64,000 bases of DNA from Marsupella aquatica (taxonomy: Eukaryota > Plantae > Marchantiophyta). The stretch is from the NCBI GenBank assembly GCA_973895155.1, contig OZ316899.1:5831241-5895240 (forward strand), written 5' to 3'. A program made the translations under genes and the position numbers. The notes below the pieces were generated by a model. It was not told where the DNA came from. It worked only from the letters and a program-made list of their open reading frames with translations, and made no database searches. Of the stretch, positions 41,631 through 57,708 are shown in pieces (position 1 is the first letter of the stretch; each line of letters begins with the position of its first letter).

Positions 41631-44600
41631 CTAAACCCTAAACACTGGCCGTAAACCCTAGAACCTTACGTACTTTCTTGTTTGGCCGTGTACTTTCTTG
41701 TTTGGCCCGTTAATTAACAAGATGTACATTCTCTAGTATAGTTTGGATCTCCCGTATCCATGTACTTGTGTGCGGTGTAGTATCGGGGATCTCTCATATC
41801 CATGGCGTACTTCCGTGCGGTGCGGTACGTGCGGTACAAGGGTCCTTCTTCCTTACTCTTCCTCGTCACTCTTGCTCTTCACTCTTTGTTAGGGCTTTCA
41901 ACGTCTTTCTCACTTATCCCTGCGCTTCCTCACTCTTCATCATTCACTCCCCGTCTCATTGACTCCCCGTTATTCCTCATGCATCCTTGCTCTTCCTAGG
42001 TCCCCTTCGCTCTTTGTCCCAGTCTTCCAATCACGTTGGATTTCCTCTCTTCCACTTATTCTTGGCAAGTGTGGCCGTGTGCCCTGGTTTGCAAAGGTGT
42101 TTTGAAGGCTTCACCTTGGTGGCAGTCGAGTCTTGTAGTTTCAAGCTTTGTGCTGGTTGGCAAAGGTGATTTGAAGGTCTTAGTCTGGTTTGAGCTTGGC
42201 AGCGGTCGACTCTCAAAGTTTCAAGCTTTGTGTTGCAAAGGGTGATTTGAAGGTCTCAGTTGGCGGCGGTCAAATCACTCTCAGTGGGTTGTAGTTTCAA
42301 GCGTGGCCCTTCTCCTATCTCCAAATTTGGATCTCTTGTTCACTGCATGACTGTCTAAATGATTTAAATGTATGTTGCAAGCTCGACATGTCAAAACTTT
42401 TGCTCGGTGGGGCTCGCCAAGATGTATGGTTATTGTGAAGTAATTCTTGAATGTTTTCTCATGTAATCTTAGATCACAATGGTGAAGAGGAAAGACTCGG
42501 TTGGTTCTGTGGTTGGACCTGTTGATAGCGGAACTTCTCGGCAGAGTAAGAAACAACGGTCTTTGTCCCCTTTGCCAGTGACATCTCGACTAACGCACTC
42601 ACAAGGTGGTCCCCTTGTGGAGTCAGTGGACGCAAGGAGGAAGTTTGAGCCAAAGAAAATATCGTTCAAGCCAATAGGAGCAGCGGGATTAGCAGATATT
42701 GCAAAGATGGGAGTTTGGGAGTTGATTGTCTCCAAGTATGAGACAAAGTTTGAAAAGGATCCTCCCCGGATCCCCTTATGCGGGCTCATGCCAATGGAGG
42801 CCGTCAGGAATCTTCATGATGAGTCAATGGTCAAACTAAAAGAAGGATTCAGAGAGAGCAGCTATATTGTAAAGCTCAGCAAGTTCCACATCACTAAGTT
42901 CAATGAAGCAGGGGAGACAAGGACACTGGCAGAGTTCAAGCCCTATTGGGACTCGTTGTGGACTGAAATCAATGAGCAATTTGAGCAAGAGTGCGATGCG
43001 TTAGAGGACTTCAAAATGCTCAAGGACAAGATGTTTTGGGTTTTTGACGGAAACCATAGGTACACAGCTTGGTCTGCAGTTGCGGAGGAGTTTCCAGATC
43101 AACCGCAATACCATCCGTGTGTCAAATTCTCTCTTTTGAACGTTGGAAAGGACGGATTCAAGAAGGTTGAGCAAGCAATGCACGCTCTGAACTTGTAAGT
43201 AACTCACATTTTGCAACAACAGGTATACAATATCATTTCCTTTGTGTGAATACCCTATTGGCAATCTGTCAAAGATTGCCCTATTTGAATGTTAGACCTA
43301 AGAACATTCTTTGCCGTGTCCAGGATAAGCGTGACTGTCATGAGGACGTCATGGTTCAATGACGCTGATCAGGTGGCAAAGTTGTTGAACACTCCATTGG
43401 AGGAGTACAGTTTGCTTATGTCAAAGGAGACACTAGAGGGTTTCCTCAAGGCTCAAAATTGTGGCCACGGGAAGACTTGGTACTCCAAGAACATGACAAA
43501 AGAGGTAGATGTGTACATCATGAGCTGGTCAAACATTGAAGCGGGGCAAATCAATATTTCAAAGGAAATGGCACAAGACGCAGCTCATGGGCACCCGTGG
43601 AATGCCAAGAGACTTGAGCATGAGACTGAGGCAATGATTACTGTTGCGTGCAAGAGCTGGGGCACTAAGTTCCCCAAGCTCACTGCCTGCGTGAATCCAG
43701 CAAATGGAGCTGAATTCATCCCGGCATGTCGACAACTCTATCACAAGTTGGCAAAGGAGGCCAAGCAGGGTGTCTTGAATGTGCAGGTTAGATTGGACAG
43801 GATCCGCTTGATTTCTGGGGCTTGGTTAACTACAGAATGCAAATTAAAACTCTTGAAGGCTCATTTTGGAACGGAGGAAGATAGGAGTAGGTATCACCAT
43901 CCACGTAGCAATAGTGATTCAACGGTTATATCATGGCTAGCAGTGTGGTCAATGTGGTGTTACATTGACTACGTTGGTTGTATCTTGTTGACCGATTTTG
44001 CTGAGAAGGCCTACCAGCCTGGAAATTTTAGCGGAACGCAAGAGGAATTTGCTAAGCTTTATAGAAAGCTTTACCAATCTTATGTGCAAGAGAAATCCTT
44101 AAAAGTAGGCGGTGACATTTGGAATGAAGGGAATACCAAATTGGCATTTTGGGACGCATGGATAAAGCAAACAAAGTGGCGCGTGACAAGATTTCTCATA
44201 CATCAAGAGAACATGAATGCAACAATGTTGAAACAACTACCATTGGCGATTAGATCTTGGATGGAGGCGACAGGTAGCCTTAGCTTGTATCCATGTGATG
44301 GTCGCATGCCTCATGGCAGAGTATTCTCAGATTGGGAACGGAGGAACTGTCCATGGTACATGGAGTATGACAATTGGAACACTTTTCTCAAGGTTGCCAA
44401 GAAGGATAGTGCAGACCTGCTCAAAGAAGCATAGGAACCTAGTAATTACTACAATATAACAAAGTTGCGACAACTGTCAGATTCAGTAACGAAGGCAACA
44501 AAGGTGGAGACCCTTATCCCAACTGACCCTGCCTATGATAGGAAGAAGGCCAGAAAAGAAGGTGAACGGAAGTTTGAGAAGGAACCATCGAGCGACATCA

Positions 44601-45362
44601 GTCAGTCTAACTCTCTAACCAGTCCAAGAAAAACATCAGGTATTACTCGATTCCTTTTGCACTACATAGTGGTTTCATTTGGCTGGGTTTGCTAACATAG
44701 TACTGAACCAATTTTGGGGTCATTGAGATAGACTGCATCTCATCTTGGCAAGGCTTGCTGAGAACAAACAAGTTTCAGTCGCATCTCGTCCGAACCCTTG
44801 GATCTCATCTCGGCAAGGCTCGCTGAGAAGAACATCCAAATGTCGTCCGGACCCTTGGAGATAAAGTATAACGTCTAGTGTCTATGGATCTCATCTCGGC
44901 AAGGCTCGCTGAGAAGAACAGCCAAATGTCGTTTGGACCCTTAGAGATGAAGTATAATGTCAAGTGTCTATGGATGTCATGTCGGCAAGGCTTGCTGAGA
45001 AGCTTAGGATCAATAACCCCATTGCTTTGCAATCTATCCAGGTTTGAAGGAGATACCGGAGGAACCAGGTTCTGTAAAAGGCAAGGCTGTAGAAGTAGCT
45101 TCAAAGCCAATTATAGAGAGGCTCAACAGCCAACAATAGAGCCGGCTATAGAACCAACTACAGAACCAACGATAGAGCCGACTACACTACAACAAGGCAA
45201 CTAGCAAGTGGAGCAACAAAGCGTGCAACCTTTGACCAAGCCAATGGCAGACCAGCCTCTGGACCAACAAAGCAAGCAGCAACAAGAGCATGATGCATCC
45301 CAGGGAGAGAATGCAACCCAAGGACGGGATCATTCAGATGACGTACGGGTAGATAACGAAGG

Positions 45363-45727
45363 GAGGTGTTTACAAAAGACAGCAAAACAGGAAATATGAG
45401 TTAATAACAGAAACTGATAACAGGAAAAAAACTGGTAACAGGAAAATGTGTGGATTTTTTTTTTTGAAATTTTTTTTTTTGGAGAAAAGAAATGTTCCTT
45501 TTTTTGGTCGACCAGTTTTTTTTGCTAGCGCCTGACGTTGCTAATAGTAGCGCCCAAAGCTAGCCAAAAATGTTGCATTGTTAATTTTTTTTTGAAAATG
45601 ACATGTTTTAGGAGACATTTTTAAATTGTCATTTTTCCTGGTAACAGTGATTTTTTCTTGGTAACAACATATTAAAAATAGGAAAAAAAATATTGTTTAC
45701 CTGTTTCCTGTCTCCGTCGCTATACCC
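45363..45727. mobile_element. MITE-like insertion of about 365 bp
   Basis: 8-bp TSD AACGAAGG (45355-45362, 45728-45735). Internal inverted repeat AGACAGCAAAACAGG / CCTGTTTCCTGTCT. AT-rich. Removal restores VDNEG|EDERAEDK. Confidence 0.75.
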
Positions 45728-45732
45728 AACGA

Positions 45733-45830
45733 AGGAGAAGATGAACGGGCAGAGGACAAAGGAGAAGACAAACGGGCAGAGGACAAAGGAGAAGACAAAC
45801 GGGTAGAGGACAAAGGAGAAGACAAACAAG
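45733..45830 (+). repeat. 27-bp coding minisatellite (GEDKRAEDK)
   Basis: ggagaagacaaacgggcagaggacaaa, about 3.5 copies. Confidence 0.9.
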
Positions 45831-47579
45831 AGGGGTGCGAGTCTGATACTCCGGTGTTGAAACGGATGCCATTATCCTCAAGGCCGAAGACAAAGGCCAC
45901 AAAAATGACCAAAACAACGAGGCCCAAACCTCGTCGCACCAAAGCACGTGACAGAGCTTGAAGACATTCTGCCCAGCCCCATAGAGCAACCCCCGCCCAG
46001 CCCAATAGAAGTTCCGCCCATGACAATCCAACATGAGGCCACAACAGATGGCCCAAATTATGAAGAGGACGTTGAAGTGCAATATGTCAAACCGGAGTCG
46101 GATGGCACAGAGGTGGTTGGAGTTTGGCGTGCAAGCGCTGATAACTTTTCTTCCCAGCTCAGGCATTGTTATTTTAAATGGTCTTTGTATCTTTTCAAAA
46201 CTTACTTTGACGCTGCCAATGACGGTAAAAAACCGGTTGTGGTACTCTGTTTTAGAGACTGGTGTAGAAATCTTAGGCGGGGTGGTTTGGCTGCAGAAGG
46301 CTGGGTAAAGAACGGGAAGCCTACAAGGTCTGGTACAAATCTGATTCTGATTCGCATGGGATCAGACACGCGCATGCACGCGGATGGGAACATCCCATTG
46401 TGGAATTTGTTCCGGCCAGATGACCTCACTCGAGTTGAGGATTTTGCGCGAGTTTTCCTCGACGATGAGGGATTGTTTGGCATAGTGCACAGTGCTTTGG
46501 TTTCCCACTGTCGTGCGAGAGTGCATGGTTATCATCGCCAATCACCATGCCCTATGCACGCCCGCTAGGATTTTATGGTAGTTTAGGTTCATCATTTAGA
46601 GACCATATATGCAAGCTATAATAGATATTCTTGGTGTTCTCTAAGCAAGCATTCTCCTCTTAGTAGCACTTTGGGCAATGTTCTTGTAGCAAACCCTGGT
46701 TGTTCTTGAAGCAAATAGTCTTTGTTAGGAGCACTCCAGAGCCAACATACTTAGATTGCTCATTGCACATTCACTGCAGTTCTTCTTGAGTCTTAACTTT
46801 AGCATTGCAAGCACTTGGCTATGGCAGCACACTCCATGGCACCTCCACACATTTGAGGATTGGCTATGACTCTTTAGATGCTCCAGCACATCATGGCATG
46901 CTGCTGGTTTTCTTATGTACTACTCACTCTACATGCTACATACGTATTACTCAAGAAGAACTATCTTCACAGGATTACATCCACCGACGTGGCAATCTGG
47001 TGATTGCTTCATCAATCAGATTTGGTTTTGAGTGATAATTGTAGAGTTCACTGAAGGCGAAAGACGTTCATGAATAGAGGGAGATTGACTTGTACAGGGA
47101 CAGGTCGAACACAAACTTTCAAGTTATTGTCAGTTCTCAAAATGCCATTTTGAGCACATCCGCAATCTAGTCTGGTTGTAACTCTTCAACTGTTTGACGA
47201 GAGTAGGAGATTTTAGCATGGTTGGAAAGCTCTCATTGAGGCGTGCAAGATTGATATAAAGAACTCCAAAAACAAAGCTCTATCAAGTGAGATACAGTCG
47301 CTGACATTTTGACTTCACCGAAATGCAATTTTGGGACAATTTTGCGAATTCCGACTTTGATCTCTACTGTTTGCGTCAACAACTTGGGGCATGTAAGGGC
47401 TCATTAGGAGCGTCTGTGAGTGCTTCATATCTTCATGATTATCTCACATATCGTTATCTATTACCAAGAGAGATGTGTGTTGAAGAGTTGGAACACCTTC
47501 ATGCAGATTTTAGGGATTTGGTCTCTATTTTGAGGTTTAGAGGAATACTGATTGATCTCTTTGAGCATGTCACATAAGC

Positions 47580-49257
47580 ATGAGCTCAGGTGACTCTAAC
47601 AGGGATCCATGGCGGCCATACCATCTCCAAAGTGACCCACGCCCATTAGAGACTATCCCTCTCAAATCATCTAGATCCTTTAGAAGGAGACACACTCAGA
47701 ATACTTCTTCTGGATCTGTCGGGGCAGGAAGCTCACATCAGGTAATTCCAACAACTACATCATATCAGGTTCCTCAATTGTCTATTCAACCACAATCAGG
47801 CATGTACACATCTCTTTCAGCTCCGACCAGCACATTCCCAGCTCCGCTGCCGACATCAACAATTCCACCAGTGTACGGGATGGAGGCTAGCAGCTCATCC
47901 AGCAAAATCGGGAAGTCTAGTGGTCGGCCTGGCACCATTTCTCTACGGGAATTCAAAGCAACATTTTACACAGTTGTGTATGAGTTGGAGCTCAAGTACT
48001 TGAGCCACTACACTGTTGCCTTTGCATTCAAACAATTGGCAAGGTATGTGCACCATGAGGCATTGGATGTGTACCAGCAGCACTCCAAGCAGTTATTGGG
48101 AGTCACTCAAACCCCAAATCCTGCTTACGTTGCTGCCATAGCCGGTGCCCACCAGACAGCACTACAAGCTGCCATTGCAACGCATGCTGCTGCTGCCGCT
48201 TCTTCATCTAGCAGTGCACCTTCGCCAGCACCCACTACAGTGGTATTGAGTCCAGCTGAGCTTGCTCTAGCTACTACAGGCATCTCTCCCACTGTTGATA
48301 CACCAGTGTATCTTGATCCAGTGGATGAGTTCTTTCAAATTCTTGAACAGGAATTTCCAGTGAAGAGCTCAGAGAAGATAATGCAGCTTGCTACATTCAT
48401 GCGACAAAAGGATGAAACGTTGAAGATGATGTACCAATGATTACTCAAGTTGAAGGAGGATACCAACAGTATCACAGACCAAGAGGCTGCATCAAGAGTT
48501 AGAGATGTGATTACCTTGCTGGAGGGAACACTGAACTCTATGTCAGGTCCCTCATCAACTACTGTGATGCCTGTTATGGAGGTCCAACATCAGGTTTTGA
48601 TTGGACCGTCCCCTTTGTCACATGCTGAACATAGTATGCATTTGTCACTTCCTAGTTCTAGTTCTAGTTCTAGTGCTACGATGAGTATTGATTCCATGGC
48701 TAGGCCTACATCTAAGTGTTCAGGGAATTCTCAGTCCCTCTTGGACATGCTCATCAGTGACAAGGTTGTGGATACTAATGTCCTACACAAGATGTCTCAC
48801 AATGTGCCCAAGATTGTTCCTAGTGATAGGACTTCAGTCTCCACTAGTGTTGCCATTGTTGATAATAGGGCTGCGGTACAGGTGGAAGGTCACATTCCTA
48901 AGGTGGTTATGCTAGATACTGGAGCTCAGCCTGTCATACTTGGCATTCAATTCGCCAAACAGTTGGGGCTAGTTGACTCCAAATTGCAAAAATCCGCATG
49001 GTACATCCGGATAGCAAGTGGCACTGTGGAGGAGGTACTAGGTGAGAGTGCTCAATTGCTCACTCTCTCTTTCAATGAAGGTACAGATCAGGAACTCCAA
49101 TTCAAGGTCAGATGTCTGGTCACCAATGCCACAAGCTATGATGTGCTCATTGGCCAAGAGGCTTTATTCCCGCCAGGATTTACCATTGATAACTGGTTTG
49201 AGCATGCATACTATCGTGCTAATTGGAAAACTGATGGCATGTGCTTGGGCTACATTC
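47580..49257 (+). pseudogene. Retrotransposon gag and aspartic protease remnant
   Basis: gag-like helical region (FAFKQLARYVHHEALDVY...FMRQKDETLKMMY) and the protease motif VMLDTGAQPVILG...YDVLIG. Confidence 0.7.
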
Positions 49258-49808
49258 CACTGGCACAACTAGATTTTGTTGCGTCGGATGCTAACAATAC
49301 CTCCTCATAATCGTCGTTAATATAATTAACGACTTCCATGACTACGTTTATAACTACGTCCGGTGTAACGGCGACCTCGGAGAAATCTAAGCGCCGATTG
49401 CCCCCATTTTAACGTCGCTGGAAACACGTTTAAAATTAACGTCTCTGGATGAGCTGTCCTAAACATCGTTTTGGTCGTCGTTCAATATTAACGTCGTATT
49501 AGAGGACGTAATGTGTTTAGGGTATAACGACGTCAATGTTTACGTCGTGGAGGGAGCCGTTAAAGTGGTAACGTTGCTCTGTAGGACGTTCCAATTGAAT
49601 CAAGCCATGTTAGATGTTGAGTACATTGGTGTGGACGACTTGAATGAGGAGTAGTCCATGCTGACTCGAGTATAGCTTGGGTTTTCTACGGGACGATGTT
49701 GGTTTAAGAGTGCTGAGACCAAAGTAGGCTTGCGTTTGTGATTTTTGGAGAATGCACTCTTCCTGAGTACAGAGAAATTGCAGCGTGGGATAGACTCAGT
49801 ATTCAATC

Positions 49809-50368: not shown

Positions 50369-50882
50369 GTAGCAACAATCTGGATGTCAATGGATGAGGC
50401 AATTTAGTGATTCGGCTAGGTTATAGTCACTTTGTGGTGGACATGCAATGTGCTTTGTAGGACCTTTGTATCTCTATATCATACTGAATCTGAATAAAGA
50501 CTCCCTCATGTTTTTCATTTTGAATGCACGTGCCAATTAATGTCACCACTGTCATTAACGTCGCACGGATATAGTAACGTTGCAATACACGACGTCTTTG
50601 GTTTAATATGTACCCTAAAACGACGTAAGTTAGTTTAACGTCGTTTTAAGTGGAGAATCAACGTCGTGTGGAGTACGTAAACTGGGTCGTGGCTAAATTA
50701 ATGATGTTGAAGGCTCAATAAAACGACGTTAATTGGAATTAACGTCTGGCTGGTACAACGTAGTTTGAAGATACATTGGTCTACAGAACGTAATAGTCAT
50801 ACAACGACGTTACCCACAGATGCTACAAACCCACATGAAGGTGGCCATAACGAATATATACATGCACTGAATACATTTATGG

Positions 50883-53800
50883 TCATGGATCCATATCATC
50901 TACAATTACTGAAGCCATCAAACCCTTCCTCCGTCGTGGGAAGATGGGAATGACGATGGACCATCCTCTCATAGTGTGCATCGGAACCATAATACACTGA
51001 TCCACCTGGCTAGGAAATACTATAGTGTCACTAACCTCAGTCCTGGATGGTGCTACACGAGTCGTGTCTACCCGATAGAACCCACACTCATCTTTCACCA
51101 TGGTGGCTCTATGTGGAGGTGACATGATGGATTTGTGCCACCGCACCTCTAACACAATAGTAGTAAATGACCCAAAGTGAACGTCTAAAATATCCAATAT
51201 AGTGCCACAACAGGGAATCTCAACATCACTTGGGTCTGTCAACATGAACACTCCTGAGTTACATGTACTCTTCTTCATGTGATCTGTCCTCCAAGTGCGA
51301 AAGTGGTGCCCTGACTCATACATGTGTGTATGGGTCATTGCCCACAACCTGGTCCCCTAATGATGTTCTGTACATCAATGGGAATGGATAAGGGGTCCAT
51401 GCTCTGCAAGGAGCCTATCCATGCGCTCCAATGCCCATACGCAAAATAATGCATACCGTCGTGCAACTATCAATTGCTGCTCCAAGAATGCACTGCAAAA
51501 AATGTATGAATCCATGAGAATATTGCGACCTCATCCACATAAGTGCTCCTTGAACCCACTCTAACTTCTACACACATAGAATGTAGAACAACGTCTATTG
51601 TTAGATTAACATATATATAGAGTTGCATATATGTACCTATGCAACTCCCTCCACTGAGACATCTCTGGGCGATTTCCCAACACATAATTGTGGATCTGTA
51701 GGCAAAGTATGTCATCATGTAGTGAACGCTTTTTTGATGCACCCATCAAACGCAACCCACTATTGTCATCATCTTGTGCCCCTTCCCAAGCTGTGGGAGC
51801 TTCTGTGTCCAACTCCCTATCATCCCTCCGGAATAAAAGAGGCACTCCGACATGATATACCCCATTGCCATACTTCCCTCTGGTTGAGCTGGTTGACGCA
51901 CCATGGACTTGAGCACTTTCATGAAGCGCTCTACCCAATACATCCAACGTGCATGGACAGGACCAGCAATCGCGATCTCATCCACCAAGTGACATAGTAA
52001 ATGCAATTGCATGTCAAATATGCATGGGGGAAACACCTTCTCCATATTGCACATCACGCGAGCTGACCTCTCCCTCATCAAAGGAATCTCAGACTCCTTT
52101 ATCTCCTTAGCGCATACCCACCTATGTTCCTCCTCAAAACCATCAAAGATTTTGTATATCAGATCCACATAGGGCCATAGAAAAATGAGTTTGAAATACT
52201 TGTTGAATTACATGGCTCCTCCAGCGGTAACAAGAACTTGCAAGAGAGCAATGGAAGAGAGGGTACGTTATCATACCTAAAAATGGAGCACATCTCATAT
52301 ATAGTCAGACGGAGTAAACGACGCTCCCGGGAATCATCACAACAATGCAAGACTGTTGGTAGCACATGTTGTATCAACTTGTGATAATCATGAGACTTCA
52401 ACCCTATTGGGGGTATGTGATCATTCCTTGTAGTGCACCCACAAAAACCAGCTCCGTAATGGCTAGGGAACTTCATCTCGCTTATCATCCCATTCATGTC
52501 CTTCAAAACCTCTCTTGGCAAAATCCAAGGACCAGGAGGTTTCTCCCCAGTACGTGTTATCCAACAACTCTTCACTACTCCAACCCTCTCAGCATCCTCT
52601 CGGACTCCACGAGTGTCATTTGTCCCATAAATGTGCTTCACCAAGTTCTTAGCAACATTCACTTCAATGTGCATGGGGTCCAACAACCATCGAACCTGGA
52701 GTCTCTGGAAATTGAAATAACATATTGAATCAGTTGCAATCTCTAAATTAAGCATTTTATTGGTCTAATTTGCTGTAAAGGAACCATGCACTTCTATCAC
52801 TTACCCTCCAATAAGGCAAGTCCCACATAGCTGAGCGTCGGTTTACTCCACAATCCTTGGGTTTCAGTAACTTTGCTTCCACCTTCTCTGCCATTTGAAT
52901 TTGTCCTTCAGCTGAAGGGCCATTAGGACATGGCCGCACTTCAGTCTCTGCCCAATGTGTTGTGTTTTGTCGCAAGTGGTCATCCATTGCCAACCGGACC
53001 CTACTGCCCTCATATGTGGTTTTGTGCAGTAGTCTTGAGTACCTCCCACGCAACTCTGGGCCACATGAAGGGCAAGCTGAAAAACCTGCCACCTTCAAGC
53101 CAGATATTGTCCCCATACCTGCCATTTCATTGAACCATGTTTAGACCACAAATAACCCCAACACTTGCATTGTACATGACATTGTGCAAACAATAGTCAT
53201 TGGGTTGCCCAATGAATTACCTGGATCATCTGTGGTGCAATGAGTGATCATCACCCTCATATTGAAGGTCCTGTCATTGCCTGCTTCACGAGTGACATCT
53301 GTTGTCACTGCTCCAACCTCCCATAGATTATGTAGCTCTTCATAAGCTGGAGCCAAACAGATATCAGGATTCTTACAGGCCTTGGGTCCAGGAATTATAG
53401 CTAATAGAAGCACATGACCCTTCTTCATTGCCAACCATGGAGGGATGTTTTGATTTATCAAAAGAACAGGCCAGATGGACTTAGGCTTCCGTCATTGTTT
53501 ATATGGGTTCACTCCATCGATTGCCAACCCCAAACAAACATTTCTTGGCTCCTGGGCAAAATTTGGCCAAGTGGCATCAATGTGCTTCCACGCTGGACTA
53601 TCTTGGTGGTATTGCATTATCCCTGGTGGGGATTTGTTCTCCACATGCCAAGTCTGTAGTGTGGATAAATGCTTTCATCGGTAGAGATGCTGAAATCGGG
53701 GAGTGATTGGGAAATAACGAAAAACCTGCCAGATCCAATGTAACGTCGTCAATTTGACGACAATCACACTAAACGTCCTTCCACACTACGTATTATTAAA

Positions 53801-54851
53801 ACTAACATCGTGGAGGACAACGTTTCTTACATACGATGTACCATGCAACGTTAGTTATTGCATCCCATACGACGTAAAAACAAAAAAATGTCAGGTGGAA
53901 AGACATAAAGTGAGATGGACGACGTAAAGTAATCAATTACATAGTCATGTACGACGTTGTTTGAAAGAATGCAACGTTAAAAGTTGGACTTTCTTGTTCT
54001 CACATTGCGTTGAGGAAAACATTACCTTTTCTGCAATCTTGTCTCCAATGGTGTCTGGTCGATATTGTGGAAGCCTACAGTGCTCCTCTGGGCAGTGAGT
54101 GTGATCCTTGTACACTCCTCTATACAAGATGCACCAACCTGGGCACATGTGGATAGTCTCTAAAGCCAACCAATTGAGGCTAACAACTTCTTAGCCTCCC
54201 TCACACATCCAAGGAGAGTGTTTGGTTGGGGCAAGAGTTTTCCGTGGAACAATTGGAAGAGTGCATCTGTATGGACATCCGAACCATTGAAAACTCCTTG
54301 CAAATTCAACATCAACAAAGTTGCACCCAACCTGGATTTGCAAAACCACAAACACCAGACTTTTTGCAGTTAGTCCAAGTAGCTAGATGGCATGCCTGGC
54401 ACTACAACTTAGACTGCCCAATATTCACTGGATGAAATTCCAGAGTTGTGATAATTTTAGGACAACCTTACCGTGAGGATGGAGATCCCTCAAATAGTGG
54501 TGTTTTGGCTTCAGTCTCCAAGTGATCCCAATCTTCTTGATCCACTTCCATGATAGGGTGCTCGGCGTCAGGTGCATGAGGTCCAAAGTGAACGTCAACA
54601 AGGTGGGCAAAGGCATCTTCTTCAAGGATAGGGTCATCTCCCTCATCTCCCTCATCGTCAACATCATCATCCAACTCTCCATCATATGCATCATGGTACT
54701 CCTCATCCTCATCGTCCATCTCATCATGGTCAAGGGGCTGACCCTCAGCATCCTCCTTGTCTGAGAAATGTAAGGTGGCACGTACGTGAAAGGCACGGGC
54801 TGATGTAGTCATCATTGATGGGTGAGGTGTGGGAGTAATATGTACACCATC
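50883..54851 (-). pseudogene. CACTA transposase core, copy 2, spliced and degenerate
   Basis: LLPQPNTL..REAKKLL, HMCPGWCILY, NIPPWL, TTDDPG, LDPMHIEVNV, GLKSHDYH, FPPCIFDMQLHL, WMYWVERFM and KDECGFYRV. Confidence 0.92.
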
Positions 54852-54984: not shown

Positions 54985-55789
54985 TCAATGCCAATCATAA
55001 TCTACGAGAATCTCTTCCCCTGCTCTAATGGTGCGGGTAGCATGTGTCAAGATGTAATGCGTGCATGCTACAAGCAAACGAGGGTGACTCTGGTCATGGA
55101 ACTCGTGCCACTCAGCGTTTGGCCTAAACCCTGAACGCCGAGAACCAATAGTGCTGTTGATGTAACCCGCCAAGTTCCCCGTGCAAGGTGGGTAACCATC
55201 AATCTGAGCATACCTAGGGTCCAACTTTAGTGACATGCCATATCGACTAAAGGTTGGGCACTGTCGGGACAAGATGCGCCATCTCGCCGCCAAATACTTG
55301 GGCCCATAGAATGGAAACAACTAAGGCAAATCATCGGGTGCACAACCGGTAGGGACCACAATATCCACAAGAGCAAATACTCCAAGTCCTACATGAGTCC
55401 CCAATGTGGAGGGGAGGATGACCCATGGGCGGTCCCAAACTATAATAGGCTCCCGAAGCGGGAGGTCCATAGGGAGTCCAAACTGGGCTGGGAAGGAGTC
55501 CTTTAAGATGTCCAAGGCTCTCCCTCGCAACTGTCTCGATGCCCGGGACACCGATGCATCAAGAAAAGGGCATCGGGGCGGAACAATCCTAGGTGGACGG
55601 GACTCAATCGATCGGGGTCTAGTGGTCACCACTACTCCCTCTCAATAGGGTGCATCCTAAACACTCTCCTCCTCCTCCAAAATACACGGTCTATCTCCCT
55701 CAATGTGGCTGGCAAATCGGATGGATGGACGAGTGGTGCGAGTGCACGATATGCAATGTCTCTCAAGCGGTCCACAGGCGAAGATCGCA
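54985..55789 (-). pseudogene. SET-domain exon inside the CACTA-2 transposase gene (in-frame stops)
   Basis: VILPSTLGTHVGLGVFALVDI ... *LFPFYGPKY ... GNLAGYINST ... PNAEW ... ATRTIRAGEEILVDYDWH*. Confidence 0.88.
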
Positions 55790-55906
55790 CTACAACAGGA
55801 ATATGTTCCACATGCTCACCAAAACAAGTTCAGAATATGACAATCAAAAAACAATTCAAGGAAGGAGATGTTATCATAATTGCAATACCCAACAAAATTG
55901 TATTAC

Positions 55907-56550
55907 CTCTCGGGTCGGGGGGTGTAACGACCATGGATCCCTAAATGGCTAAGGACAGTGGTCCTCTCGTGTAAGACAACACCCTTGCATCGTCTGCAAC
56001 GGCAAGGCATCTTGCGAACTGGCCCAATCCCCTGAAGAGCAGCCATGGCCTCTCCAAATCCATCAGCATGATGGGGGCTCCAGCCTCTCCTACCCTCGGA
56101 ATGATGTCTGCGTCGACAACGCCTGGATTGGTGACGCCTAGATCAATCATACATGTCTGGTGAGTAATCTCTCTCCCGGTCCGATAGGTCATCCCTCCCC
56201 CTATGATGATGGTCATCTCTGCGTCGGGTGTAAGTACCCCCACCATGGTCCTCATAGGATGAGTCATCCCTCCTCCTCCCTCCCTTGTCATCCCTCCTCC
56301 TCTGCCGCTCGTCATTGCTCCTATAGCCCGATGAAGCTGAACTCCCCCTATGCCGATGATGGTGTCTATGTCGGTGAGAACTACCGCCATGCTCATCGTC
56401 ATCATCACACGAGTCATCCCTTTGCCTATCTGACTCATCATACGTCCCCCTATGATGATGATGGTATCTGTGCCGATGATGCCTGCCCCCATCATGGTCC
56501 GATGCATAGGTTGCCATGTCCCCTGTGATCAAATTTACAAAGGCCCCCAC
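55907..56550 (-). pseudogene. First exon: His/Arg/Asp-rich repeats followed by a transposase-associated Cys/His domain
   Basis: Reading through the TGA at 56143 gives PCRCRRCKGVVLHERTTVLSHLGIHG, then donor AG|GTAATA at 55906. Confidence 0.78.
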
Positions 56551-57708
56551 AACATATTAAACCCCAAGCATAAACGTATCCCGCTACGTTAACCAAAATA
56601 ATGTCCATCCACACGACGTTCTTCTAAAATTAACGTCGTTTTTTAGGTTGTGGGGAGGTTGCTGAATTTAGTTTACGTCATAATGTACGACGTACTTAAT
56701 AAGTTAATGTCGTTCGGTATGACGTAATTATGTGTAACGTTGCCACTAAACCCTACACCCCTGGTTAATGTTGTGATTAATGACGTTAAATTAGGGTAAC
56801 GGCGGGTCTCCAAGGTTCGTGGGCTATGGCTGTTTTCCTTTAACAAAACATCGGGAAGTGACTCGAATGTGACTCACATTCAACATTCAACACTTCCCCT
56901 CTCCCCCTCTCGACCTCCTATCTTAACAGTGAATGACTATGGCTCATCCACGCTATCTCCCTTCCAATGGAGATTTTTGTGACGCCGTCGGTACGGCGGT
57001 TAATGAGTGATTCGGTCTAACTGCGCTTAGCACGCGCGTTACGAGTGTCTTAGGCCGCTATTATTAGCATAATGACAATATTTAGGTAATCATTATGGGT
57101 AGGACATCATTAGGCAATAAGGGGGAATTCAGGTTCGGATTGGCAACGGGTCGCTATTCGCACACCCGGGTTACGAGCGTGGAGGGGCCCCTCCCTCGAG
57201 TCCGTATAACGAACTTAAGGAAGCGGCCACTGACACGCGCTGACTCAGACCGGCGGAGTGGCCGGTACACCACAAGCGTGAGCGGTTCAGCCTATGGGCG
57301 TCGAGGAGATGTCGGGGGATCGGCAAGCCCTCAAGGTATAAAAAGGGAGCCGACCCTTTGGAGTGCACCAGTCCATCAGTCCACGCGCCAGCTTCAACCC
57401 CAGCTCTCTCGTTTGCTCTAAGTCGCCACTACTATCTCCTCTGAATGTCGCACACGATCCTCTCTAGCTCGACCATTCGATTCTGGACGCAATTCCTATC
57501 TACCGGAAGGCACTTGACCGACTCATTGAAACACGCCAACCTGCGCCGATACAAAATTGAACGTGAGTACGAGAGAGCCATCCGCCTAGCAGGATGACAC
57601 CACTACATCCTTAACTTTGACTACCCGTCTCAGAGCGAGCTTTACCGACCAGCAGAGGTATCTGGGTACTTCTTCAACAGAGACAAATATATCGGTTTCT
57701 GGGAAGCA

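Follow-up and report, generated by a model that had tools for sequence, protein, structure and literature searches.

The window analysed here is the whole 64,000-nucleotide stretch of Marsupella aquatica DNA, and its positions 54,985 to 56,550 raise the question of how a SET-domain exon came to lie between a Cys/His exon and the transposase of a CACTA element, here called CACTA-2. The original prediction was that CACTA-2 and a second element of the window, CACTA-1, carry the SET exon as an old, selected component and not as a recent Pack-CACTA capture. This view is supported by a private SET family, congruent trees and pN/pS ratios. Very probably, CACTA-2 belongs, as a dead copy, to an old TNP2-type lineage in which the SET exon is ancestral, co-inherited with the transposase and under selection, and would encode an alternative zinc-motif–SET (Zn-SET) product acting in lysine methylation.

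Layout and comparison of the two elements

CACTA-2 is flanked by retroelements on both sides. Its features are listed below; a slash in a splice site marks the exon boundary.

About 50.5-56.9 kb, minus strand: CACTA-2 element
56927..56931, minus: tentative 5' terminus, CACTG (CACTGTTA on the minus strand)
56600..56830, minus: 5' subterminal region with copies of the AACGTCG/ACGACGTT motif
55907..56517, minus: exon 1, with ATG at 56517, a His/Arg/Asp-rich low-complexity stretch and then the Cys/His motif
55945..56004, minus: CRCRRC-x13-H, PF13963-like zinc motif
55790..55906, minus: intron from exon 1 to the SET exon, from sequence reading (donor AG/GTAATA, acceptor TTGTAG/T)
54985..55789, minus: SET exon with its own TGA stop (54985-54987)
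55324-55641 and 54988-55320, minus: SET core
55423-55437, 55375-55389 and 55303-55320, minus: SET motifs WDRPW, GLGVF and LFPFYG, N-terminal side
55189-55200, 55153-55179 and 55012-55038, minus: SET motifs DGYP, GNLAGYINS and TRTIRAGEE, C-terminal side
54985-55002, minus: end of SET, DYDWH (54988-55002) and then stop
55321..55323, minus: inactivating in-frame TAG in the SET core
55635..55645, minus: approximate site of the frameshift between linker frame and SET-core frame, the parts matching protein P0001 in different frames
50886..54851, minus: TNP2-type transposase exons, with several stops
54851, minus: first exon base after the phase-0 transposase acceptor AAAACTCTAG/G
53144-53461 and 52760-53125, minus: Transposase_21 (Pfam PF02992, E=1.8e-15)
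53219..53230, minus: D-D-P-G codons and phase-1 intron donor G/GTAATT
51749-52168, minus: DUF4218 (Pfam PF13960, E=3.5e-30)
50557-50805: copies of the AACGTCG motif inside the 3' terminus
50547..50551, plus: tentative 3' terminus, CACTG read inward

Clusters of short subterminal repeats, which characterize TNP2-type CACTA elements, are present at both ends of CACTA-2 (on the 5' side the AACGTCG copies lie at 56614-56632), and the two subterminal regions contain an inverted match (50720-50757 against 56602-56642). The ends agree in seven of their first eight nucleotides (CACTGT[C/T]A), and their placement is tentative. No convincing terminal inverted repeat beyond 8 nt and no 3-bp target-site duplication were found there, the flanking three nucleotides reading ATT and CAC outward, which points to wrongly placed ends or to a rearranged copy. 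There is no room in CACTA-2 for a TnpA-like gene, and the transposase matches are interrupted by stops.

The CACTA-2 copy is broken and dead. Its exon 1 contains an in-frame TGA (56143-56145), and the predicted SET exon, while present, is not an open frame, owing to the TAG and the frameshift listed above. The two halves of its SET core are 53% and 69% identical to P0001, an intact relative, and the linker (in the frame of 55635-55829) matches residues 1-26 of that protein. An in-frame junction of exon 1 and the SET exon (AG+T) was considered as the ancestral state and rejected, since a different frame of the linker is the one that aligns with the intact relative. The closest relative of CACTA-2 is the locus L022, which likewise has a His/Arg-rich head, followed by a CPCRRC-x13-H motif.

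CACTA-1 provides the comparison:

About 9-14.6 kb: CACTA-1 element
13284..13517, minus: exon 1 with a Ser/Asp-rich head and phase-0 donor ATG/GTGAGT
13341-13400, minus: CGCKTC-x13-H
12349..13175, minus: SET exon, with phase-0 acceptor TATAG/GTATCC at 13175 and stop at 12349-12351
9173..12216, minus: TNP2-type transposase exons, with phase-0 acceptor CCATAG/AAT at 12216
11025-11036, minus: D-Y-P-G codons and phase-1 intron donor G/GTAAGG

This copy, too, is dead. Exon 1 has an in-frame TGA at 13425-13427, the SET exon carries three frameshifts, and the transposase has an in-frame TAG a few codons ahead of the ATG at 12033. Its transposase matches Pfam Transposase_21 (E=4.7e-26) and DUF4218 (E=2.6e-32), and it resembles protein P0130 of Calypogeia fissa in exon 1 (53% identity) and in the N and C parts of SET (57% and 78%).

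As predicted, the two elements are strongly diverged and share one module order. At the DNA level only three short matches of 66-74% are found, and the repeat motif AACGTCG occurs nine times in CACTA-2 and zero times in CACTA-1. At the protein level, the Cys/His, SET, Transposase_21 and DUF4218 modules follow each other collinearly, in blocks of 33-62% identity. First, the spacing of the Cys/His motif is identical (CRCRRC-x13-H in CACTA-2 and CGCKTC-x13-H in CACTA-1). Second, the SET blocks can be aligned, with 40% identity in the N-halves and 48% in the C-halves (tblastn E=2e-14 and 2e-10); all of the conserved SET blocks listed in the prediction are present, but LFPYGGPIY of CACTA-1 lies in another frame. 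Third, the stop falls at a common position, Y-x-W-x-stop, which reads DYDWH-stop in CACTA-2 and HYEWD-stop at 12349 in CACTA-1. Furthermore, both transposases have the phase-1 intron after D-x-P-G.

The SET family and its descent with the transposase

A search with a profile built from both SET halves retrieved 73 proteins at E<1e-3 among 1.84e9 (1.84 billion) representatives. Nearly all of them form one private family with like motifs (WGRxW, GLGxF, LFPYxGxxY, DG[DY]P, GN[IL]AGYINS and A-x-R-T-I-x-A-G-[DE]-E, then stop) and a like stop position. Both SETs of the window fall in this one family and not beside separate host SET genes. No host parent gene of the SET exon was found among the 1.84e9 representatives, the close matches all belonging to the transposon-linked family. 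The sole SET copy that is not linked to a transposase, P0053/P0110 of Calypogeia, is confined to its species and forms a long branch; a search with P0053 found no further relative, so it represents no conserved host donor. A homologue search with the family alignment gave at least 15 proteins, and a metagenome scan with it gave three short loci only.

Fifteen of the fetched loci extend far enough to show the neighbourhood of SET, and in 14 of them a TNP2 transposase directly follows the SET member. Intact SET ORFs occupy this position, directly ahead of Transposase_21/DUF4218, in L002-L009, L010, L016, L017, L019 and L021 and in the Riccia loci L001, L018 and L020; because these intact ORFs were drawn from a protein database, open frames are favoured among them. 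Most of the relatives are metagenome or SRA contigs.

Trees of the SET-carrying elements were compared. Broken SET exons were translated through their breaks, each of which was marked X, and the two transposase blocks entered the analysis as separate single-HSP blocks without concatenation. The SET and Transposase_21 trees have six of nine splits in common, including all supported clades, an agreement reached by none of 20,000 label shuffles. The SET and DUF4218 trees have four of seven in common, which equals the agreement between Transposase_21 and DUF4218 themselves. Mantel correlations in the co-phylogeny comparison were r = 0.74 and 0.68. The trees are thus congruent, as an old component had been expected to make them: their supported clades agree, and all three recover the deep split between CACTA-2 and CACTA-1.

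The proposed check on selection gave pN/pS ratios below one for the SET exon (0.29, p=4e-6, and 0.56, p=0.03), and exon 1 gave 0.33 (p=0.009). In the close pair L010/L021 the introns are as similar as the exons, so the pN/pS of that pair is a weak test. Between the lineages synonymous sites are saturated and the motifs are kept; dN/dS of distant pairs was not used as evidence because of this saturation. Collectively, these sequence comparisons support the view that the SET exon is inherited together with the transposase and is under selection in related elements. It probably predates the split between the DGYP type (CACTA-2) and the DGDP type (CACTA-1) lineages and, in active copies, has been transmitted with the transposase under purifying selection.

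Great age is not the only way to read this distribution. The named sources of the SET-carrying lineage so far are two liverworts only, Riccia sorocarpa and Calypogeia fissa, and their copies fall in different subclades without a clear host-like pattern, as might follow if a single SET-carrying CACTA family had spread horizontally among liverworts. We consider such an account unlikely, as the window lineages show saturated synonymous sites and protein identities of 40-50% in SET as well as transposase, which indicates long separate histories by whatever route. Even with horizontal spread, the SET exon would still be an ancestral component of the element and under selection.

Predicted fold of the SET domain and proposed splicing of the Cys/His exon

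The C-halves of both window SETs exceed the gathering score of Pfam SET (PF00856; 26.2 and 31.9 bits against 22.4), while neither N-half alone matches Pfam SET. The fold was assessed on the intact relative P0001, which is 53-69% identical to CACTA-2, in place of the broken window copy. Its AlphaFold model has pLDDT >90 over the SET part and superposes on histone lysine methyltransferases with Z of 11-12 and rmsd of 2.2-3 Å over about 120-135 residues. In this model the predicted fold, the GxG loop, the cofactor Asn and the Tyr resemble those of Set1/COMPASS, EZH2, SETD8, MLL1, ASH1L, SET7/9 and LegAS4 of Legionella. Identity to solved SETs is only 15-24% with no subfamily standing out, and the family profile had no significant match to a solved SET among PDB sequences (best E=0.025-0.15). 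Unlike the solved SETs, the family has no pre-SET or post-SET Cys clusters and carries N-S-[ST] in place of NHSC.

The latter difference bears on whether the protein is an enzyme. The NHSC motif reads I-N-S-[ST] in the family, with the His replaced (LegAS4 aligns with I-N-F-S there), so catalysis is not assured. Moreover, the chain ends three residues after the Tyr of the catalytic motif, with the post-SET region absent, and characterised SETs are only very distantly related to the family. The domain might therefore be conserved for binding or regulation, or as a dominant inhibitor of the transposase via the shared N-terminus. We regard such a non-catalytic role as quite unlikely: 20 divergent members show no or almost no variation at GLGxF, the cofactor Asn or the Tyr of E-L-x-x-x-Y, the predicted fold superposes on active methyltransferases (Z about 12), and small SET enzymes without a post-SET region are known (SET8, SET7/9 and viral SET).

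The second question is how such a SET protein would be expressed. In 12 of 17 loci, SET is preceded at a distance of 250-1100 nt by a Cys/His exon with a GT donor after it. Its C, C, C and H are invariant among homologous exon-1 ORFs. Pfam Transpos_assoc (PF13963) is the top match, weak and always below the gathering score, in eight of 11 of these ORFs (best E=5e-4), where it covers only profile positions of about 34-65 of 74; the CACTA-2 exon also matches it weakly, below cut-off, at E=0.003. These weak matches suggest that the exon may be the core of the Transposase-associated domain, and therefore the first exon of the transposase itself.

In L010, L021 and L019 the exon 1 donor, the SET acceptor and the transposase acceptor are all in phase 0. 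Donor and SET acceptor are in phase 0 in L022 and CACTA-1 as well, and so is the CACTA-1 transposase acceptor. Because a phase-0 donor faces both acceptors in intact relatives, alternative splicing of one donor into either a Zn-SET protein or the transposase would fit. Gene models that join exon 1 to the SET exon exist in Calypogeia fissa (P0130 and P0136) and Riccia sorocarpa (P0031 and P0033), and the junction in P0130 is the one inferred for CACTA-1. Each exon was searched singly, and spliced models were never joined for searches. Unlike the intact relatives, CACTA-2 has phases compatible with neither splice. The caution of the original prediction about its splicing was thus right, as the donor at 55906/55905 leaves 2 nt and the transposase acceptor is in phase 0.

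Accordingly arranged, the unit would work as follows. The first exon of the transposase gene would encode a head of low complexity and then CxCxxC-x13-H, the core of the Transposase-associated domain, and the self-terminating SET exon would sit in the intron after this first exon. Splicing of the exon 1 donor to the SET exon would yield a Zn-motif–SET protein of about 260-420 aa with its stop right after Y-x-W; skipping of the SET exon would join the same donor to the transposase exons. The shared N-terminal module could bring the Zn-SET protein to the sites of the transposase, where it would probably methylate lysine in a histone, a transposition protein or a host protein, to the benefit of the element.

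A single SET–transposase fusion protein, with the stop skipped or spliced out, would be another possible product. In Riccia, the 773-aa model P0028 continues from the C-half of SET into the transposase, and P0141 joins parts of SET with transposase sequence; both, however, lack parts of SET and look like models on decayed copies. The SET exon has its own stop at the common place in essentially all family members, the four gene models named above and the Logan ORF P0035 end at that stop, and a phase-0 donor fits the transposase acceptor directly, which together make a fusion highly unlikely.

Relation to known systems and significance

Recent or independent Pack-CACTA-type captures of host SET fragments, with the common order a coincidence or a preferred site, have next to no probability and are largely refuted: CACTA elements do transduplicate host gene fragments and both window copies are non-functional, but no host parent turned up, the SET and transposase trees agree, exon position, phase and stop are alike in many loci, pN/pS is below one, and SET divergence (40-48%) matches that of the transposase (about 50%). 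The likeness to Pack-CACTA consists in host-like coding sequence inside a CACTA element; the differences are a complete domain that is conserved across deep lineages, constrained, co-inherited and without a detectable host parent.

In maize En/Spm, TnpA and TnpD are produced from one transcription unit by alternative splicing. The liverwort elements resemble it as TNP2-type CACTA elements (Transposase_21 and DUF4218, a putative Transposase-associated N-terminal motif, subterminal clusters and tentative CACT-type ends) and, judging from their exons, apparently also in giving two products with a common 5' exon from one unit. Unlike in En/Spm, the second product would be a SET-domain protein instead of TnpA, encoded by an extra exon that precedes the transposase body within the first intron. 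No description of a SET-exon-carrying CACTA element in land plants was found in the literature.

To our knowledge, few transposons carry chromatin or DNA modifiers of their own, and those that do are informative on the arms race with host silencing. Carriers of such modifiers include elements with VANC, TET/JBP in KDZ/Plavaka elements, the PAG cassette and the SET of HarbingerS.

Several of these can be compared by description only. SET genes are described in HarbingerS and in MuDR families of Phytophthora (Kojima & Jurka, Repbase Reports 2014, as cited in PMC12730594), and Helitrons are described as having captured SET (cited in bioRxiv 10.1101/2025.02.11.637652). They share with the liverwort elements an accessory SET histone-lysine-methyltransferase-like gene in a DNA transposon. 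They belong to other superfamilies and hosts (animals, oomycetes), and their SET is a separate gene, whereas the liverwort SET appears as an alternative exon behind the first exon of the transposase.

Closer in classification is PAG2 of Plavaka elements (EnSpm/CACTA superfamily) in red algae, which the same preprint describes as a long-conserved SET accessory protein with a proposed chromatin role, an N6-adenine DNA methylase–SET fusion in the three-gene cassette of giant elements of 17-19 kb (bioRxiv 10.1101/2025.02.11.637652). By description, the wider CACTA superfamily and a conserved SET accessory are common to both. Unlike PAG2, the liverwort elements are of about 6-10 kb and TNP2-type, with SET alone behind the zinc motif of the transposase. 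VANC proteins of VANDAL (MuDR) elements in Arabidopsis are, as cited in PMC12730594, anti-silencing proteins thought to act on the chromatin of their own element. By analogy VANC may serve as a functional model for the Zn-SET protein; it is not a SET-type enzyme and has no sequence or fold relation to SET.

A more specific role is conceivable but doubtful, namely that the Zn-SET protein replaces TnpA, is made from the transposase transcript and is guided to the ends by its zinc module, and that its lysine-methyl mark shields the element against host silencing or reverses such silencing. The mark could then be written on nearby nucleosomes or on the transposase. If this were true, land plants would have a transposon-encoded histone writer that targets its own element, present in both major liverwort classes and kept through the deep split of the element lineages.

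For the biology of these elements, the preferred reading of an ancestral, selected SET exon means that a land-plant CACTA lineage has co-inherited a SET-type exon through a deep split and apparently expresses it from the first exon of its transposase. The annotated genes in Riccia sorocarpa and Calypogeia fissa, together with the intact ORFs at hand, make this a testable system. For annotation, it means that many liverwort "SET domain-containing proteins" are transposon products.

Layout and decay of the two elements

CACTA-2, the element under study, and CACTA-1 are two CACTA transposons in the window, both of which carry an exon of the SET lysine-methyltransferase type between a Cys/His-motif exon and a TNP2-type transposase.

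Features of the two elements (window positions)
About 50.5-56.9 kb, minus strand: CACTA-2, CACTA-type element
5' end of CACTA-2, minus strand: subterminal region with copies of AACGTCG
From ATG at 56517 to donor AG/GTAATA at 55906/55905, minus strand: CACTA-2 exon 1, a His/Arg/Asp-rich stretch, then the Cys/His motif
55945-56004, minus strand: CACTA-2 Cys/His motif CRCRRC-x13-H
117 nt, minus strand: CACTA-2 intron from exon 1 to the SET exon
55789-54985, minus strand: CACTA-2 SET exon, last residues DYDWH-stop
From acceptor 54853/54852, minus strand: CACTA-2 transposase exons, Transposase_21 (PF02992) and DUF4218 (PF13960)
About 9-14.6 kb, minus strand: CACTA-1, same module series
13341-13400, minus strand: CACTA-1 Cys/His motif CGCKTC-x13-H
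13175-12349, minus strand: CACTA-1 SET exon, C-half 31.9 bits (Pfam SET), last residues HYEWD-stop

The second half of the CACTA-2 SET exon scored 26.2 bits, above the Pfam SET gathering score of 22.4, and Transposase_21 and DUF4218 were likewise found after the SET exon of CACTA-1. When the CACTA-2 SET pieces were run against the window by tblastn, CACTA-1 was their sole match (38% over 95 aa, E=2e-14; 45% over 73 aa, E=2e-10). In tblastx, blocks of 33-62% identity followed one another in the same order in both elements, starting with the Cys/His motif and ending where the transposase ends. DNA likeness (blastn) was limited to three segments, 62-190 nt long and 66-74% identical, the repeat motifs were unlike, and both transposases had a phase-1 intron behind D-x-P-G. 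These results therefore confirmed the original prediction that CACTA-2, far diverged and with its own repeat motifs, keeps the order of Cys/His exon, SET exon and transposase, the same SET blocks and the phase-1 intron.

Both window copies are dead, and 54985-56550 is a broken relic. In CACTA-2, a TGA interrupts exon 1 at 56143-56145, a frameshift lies near 55635-55645 (the linker and the SET core match P0001, an intact relative, in different frames), a TAG falls within the SET core at 55321-55323, and the transposase carries stops. In CACTA-1, exon 1 is interrupted by a TGA, three frameshifts disrupt the SET exon and a TAG falls within the transposase exon.

The Cys/His exons of the window matched Pfam Transpos_assoc (PF13963) weakly (E=0.003 and 0.03). 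When homologous ORFs from nine other loci were included, PF13963 was the top family for 8 of 11 exon-1 ORFs, each below the cut-off, with the CxCxxC...H core covered; three Cys and the His were the only invariant columns of the alignment. TNP2 transposases usually begin with PF13963, so the Cys/His exon is probably the transposase's own first exon, with the SET exon lying in the intron behind it.

Several local observations concern the surroundings. The His/Arg/Asp-rich low-complexity head of CACTA-2 exon 1 (56146-56517, minus strand) has a like composition in the closest relative (L022:2-200), unlike other lineages, in which the heads are Ser/Asp- or Lys-rich. Two more AACGTCG copies, at 49411 and 49490, lie about 1 kb past the tentative 3' end of CACTA-2, within or beside a plus-strand retroelement fragment whose aspartic protease ORF spans 48450-49307 (Pfam gag-asp_proteas); the real end may therefore be disturbed. 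The 3' side of CACTA-1 is directly adjoined by Ty3/gypsy-type pol and gag ORFs (5066-8304, minus strand) with integrase, RNase H, reverse transcriptase and protease motifs.

Co-inheritance and constraint

Two accounts of the SET exon were weighed: an old, selected component of the element, as originally predicted, or a Pack-CACTA capture. Three separate trees were built from single blocks with exons unjoined (15 rows for SET, 12 for the Transposase_21 core, 10 for DUF4218), the broken window SET exons being read through with an X per break. The groups {CACTA-1, L019}, {L010, L016} and {L018, L020} appeared in all three trees, and {L001, L017} in both trees that contain L017. CACTA-2 grouped with L002 (and L014) at 90/99 in the Transposase_21 tree and 87/92 in the DUF4218 tree; the SET tree placed it weakly (51/10) with {L002, L014, L011}, within the DGYP group at 69/90. 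SET and Transposase_21 had 6 of 9 splits in common, a number reached in 0 of 20,000 label shuffles, and SET and DUF4218 4 of 7 (26 of 20,000 shuffles), as many as the two transposase domains share with each other. Path lengths in the SET and transposase trees correlated at 0.74 and 0.68 (0 of 5,000 shuffles). This congruence argues that the SET exon has travelled with the transposase since before CACTA-1 and CACTA-2 split.

Comparisons among copies pointed to constraint. Between L011 and L014, which are moderately diverged, the SET exon had a pN/pS of 0.29 (Fisher p=4e-6). The close pair L010/L021 gave 0.56 for the SET exon (p=0.03), 0.33 for exon 1 (p=0.009) and 0.12 for a Transposase_21 ORF. 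Since introns and exons of this pair are equally similar, it tests constraint only weakly. Synonymous sites are saturated between lineages (dS >1.6), and the motifs are nevertheless kept. Many divergent lineages hold open SET frames of 260-406 codons, in a protein-database source that favours open frames. Together, tree congruence and pN/pS below 1 supported an old, selected component rather than a Pack-CACTA capture.

Splicing and predicted products

Among 17 loci, 12 have a CxCxxC-x13-H exon 250-1100 nt upstream of the SET match, with a GT donor a few codons later. In the intact loci L010, L021 and L019, as in CACTA-1, phase 0 holds at the donor and at the acceptors of both the SET exon and the transposase, and in L010 and L021 each acceptor sits exactly at the start of its open frame; L022 has a phase-0 donor and SET acceptor. 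Thus, judged from intron phase, one donor could serve two acceptors: splicing to the SET exon would yield a Zn-motif-SET protein terminated by the SET stop, and splicing to the transposase exons would yield the transposase. Exon 1 is joined to the SET exon in gene models of Calypogeia fissa (P0130, 351 aa, and P0136) and Riccia sorocarpa (P0031, P0033). P0130, with 53-78% identity to CACTA-1, has its junction exactly where that of CACTA-1 was placed; in P0035, from an SRA assembly, both parts form one continuous ORF. The doubt originally raised over CACTA-2 splicing was borne out: with 2 nt left over at the donor, a phase-0 transposase acceptor and a linker frame that calls for 1 nt, both junctions are out of frame, as expected of a decayed copy.

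An AlphaFold model of P0001, made with a 20-member family alignment, had pLDDT >90 over residues ~80-260. Foldseek retrieved the histone lysine methyltransferases LegAS4 (from Legionella), MLL1, NSD and SET7/9, and VIA-align placed Set1, EZH2, SETD8, MLL1, ASH1L and SET7/9 in a tie (Z 11-12, rmsd 2.2-3 A, 118-135 residues); the family profile found nothing significant among the sequences of solved chains. The GLGxF loop, the cofactor-motif Asn and the Tyr of E-L-x-x-x-Y are invariant or nearly so, and the chain stops three residues past this Tyr. The NHSC His is replaced (I-N-S-[ST]); LegAS4 has I-N-F-S at the aligned place. Methyltransferase activity is plausible.

The SET family and its precedents

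Of 1.84 billion representative proteins, only 73 matched a profile of the two window SET C-halves at E<1e-3. Nearly all share the motifs and stop at most a few residues from Y-x-W. They form two subtypes, DGYP (CACTA-2-like) and DGDP (CACTA-1-like), and P0001 is nearest to the CACTA-2 SET (53-69% identical). Riccia sorocarpa and Calypogeia fissa are the only named sources; the remainder are unlabelled SRA or metagenome assemblies. With one exception, each fetched contig with enough flank carries the SET ORF directly 5' of Transposase_21/DUF4218, both on one strand.

Fetched loci of the SET family
L002-L009 (one identical 300-aa ORF in eight SRA runs), L010, L013, L014, L016, L017, L019, L021 and, from Riccia, L001, L018, L020: SET upstream of transposase
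L015:10001-11512: P0053 gene, 503 aa, single exon, two C-x12-C-x9-C-x2-H-like motifs

The exception, Calypogeia fissa P0053 with its paralogue P0110, combines Cys-rich N-terminal motifs with a long-branch SET of the same family. No transposase was found within 10 kb of P0053, host genes (FtsH, mL59-like) are near, and the database search gave no other relatives of the pair; P0053 may be a copy that was domesticated or recombined. A third, decayed element on a JGI metagenome contig (L013:700-5073; order SET, Transposase_21, DUF4218) is far more divergent, its SET being just 26-28% identical to P0001 and P0005, and hints that the arrangement may predate the window's two lineages. Gene models P0028 (L018:10001-14242, Riccia sorocarpa) and P0141 pass from a partial SET into transposase; they are the sole hint of a SET-transposase fusion and probably annotation artefacts on decayed copies.

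SET domains have precedents in other DNA transposons: HarbingerS and Phytophthora MuDR families (as cited in PMC12730594) and Helitrons that captured SET (as cited in bioRxiv 10.1101/2025.02.11.637652). The latter describes PAG2, an accessory gene of red-algal Plavaka, in the wider EnSpm/CACTA superfamily, in which SET is fused to an N6-adenine methylase. Three window ORFs at 42479-46565 (plus strand) had no Pfam match at E<0.01; if they are ParB-like or DNA methyltransferase-like genes beside a MULE, they would be reminiscent of the ParB plus methylase/SET accessory cassette of red-algal Plavaka elements. Full-text searching of the literature turned up no account of CACTA elements with a SET exon in land plants. 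The liverwort case is thus a new form of a known theme, and what the present analysis adds for the CACTA-SET arrangement is the comparison of SET and transposase trees.
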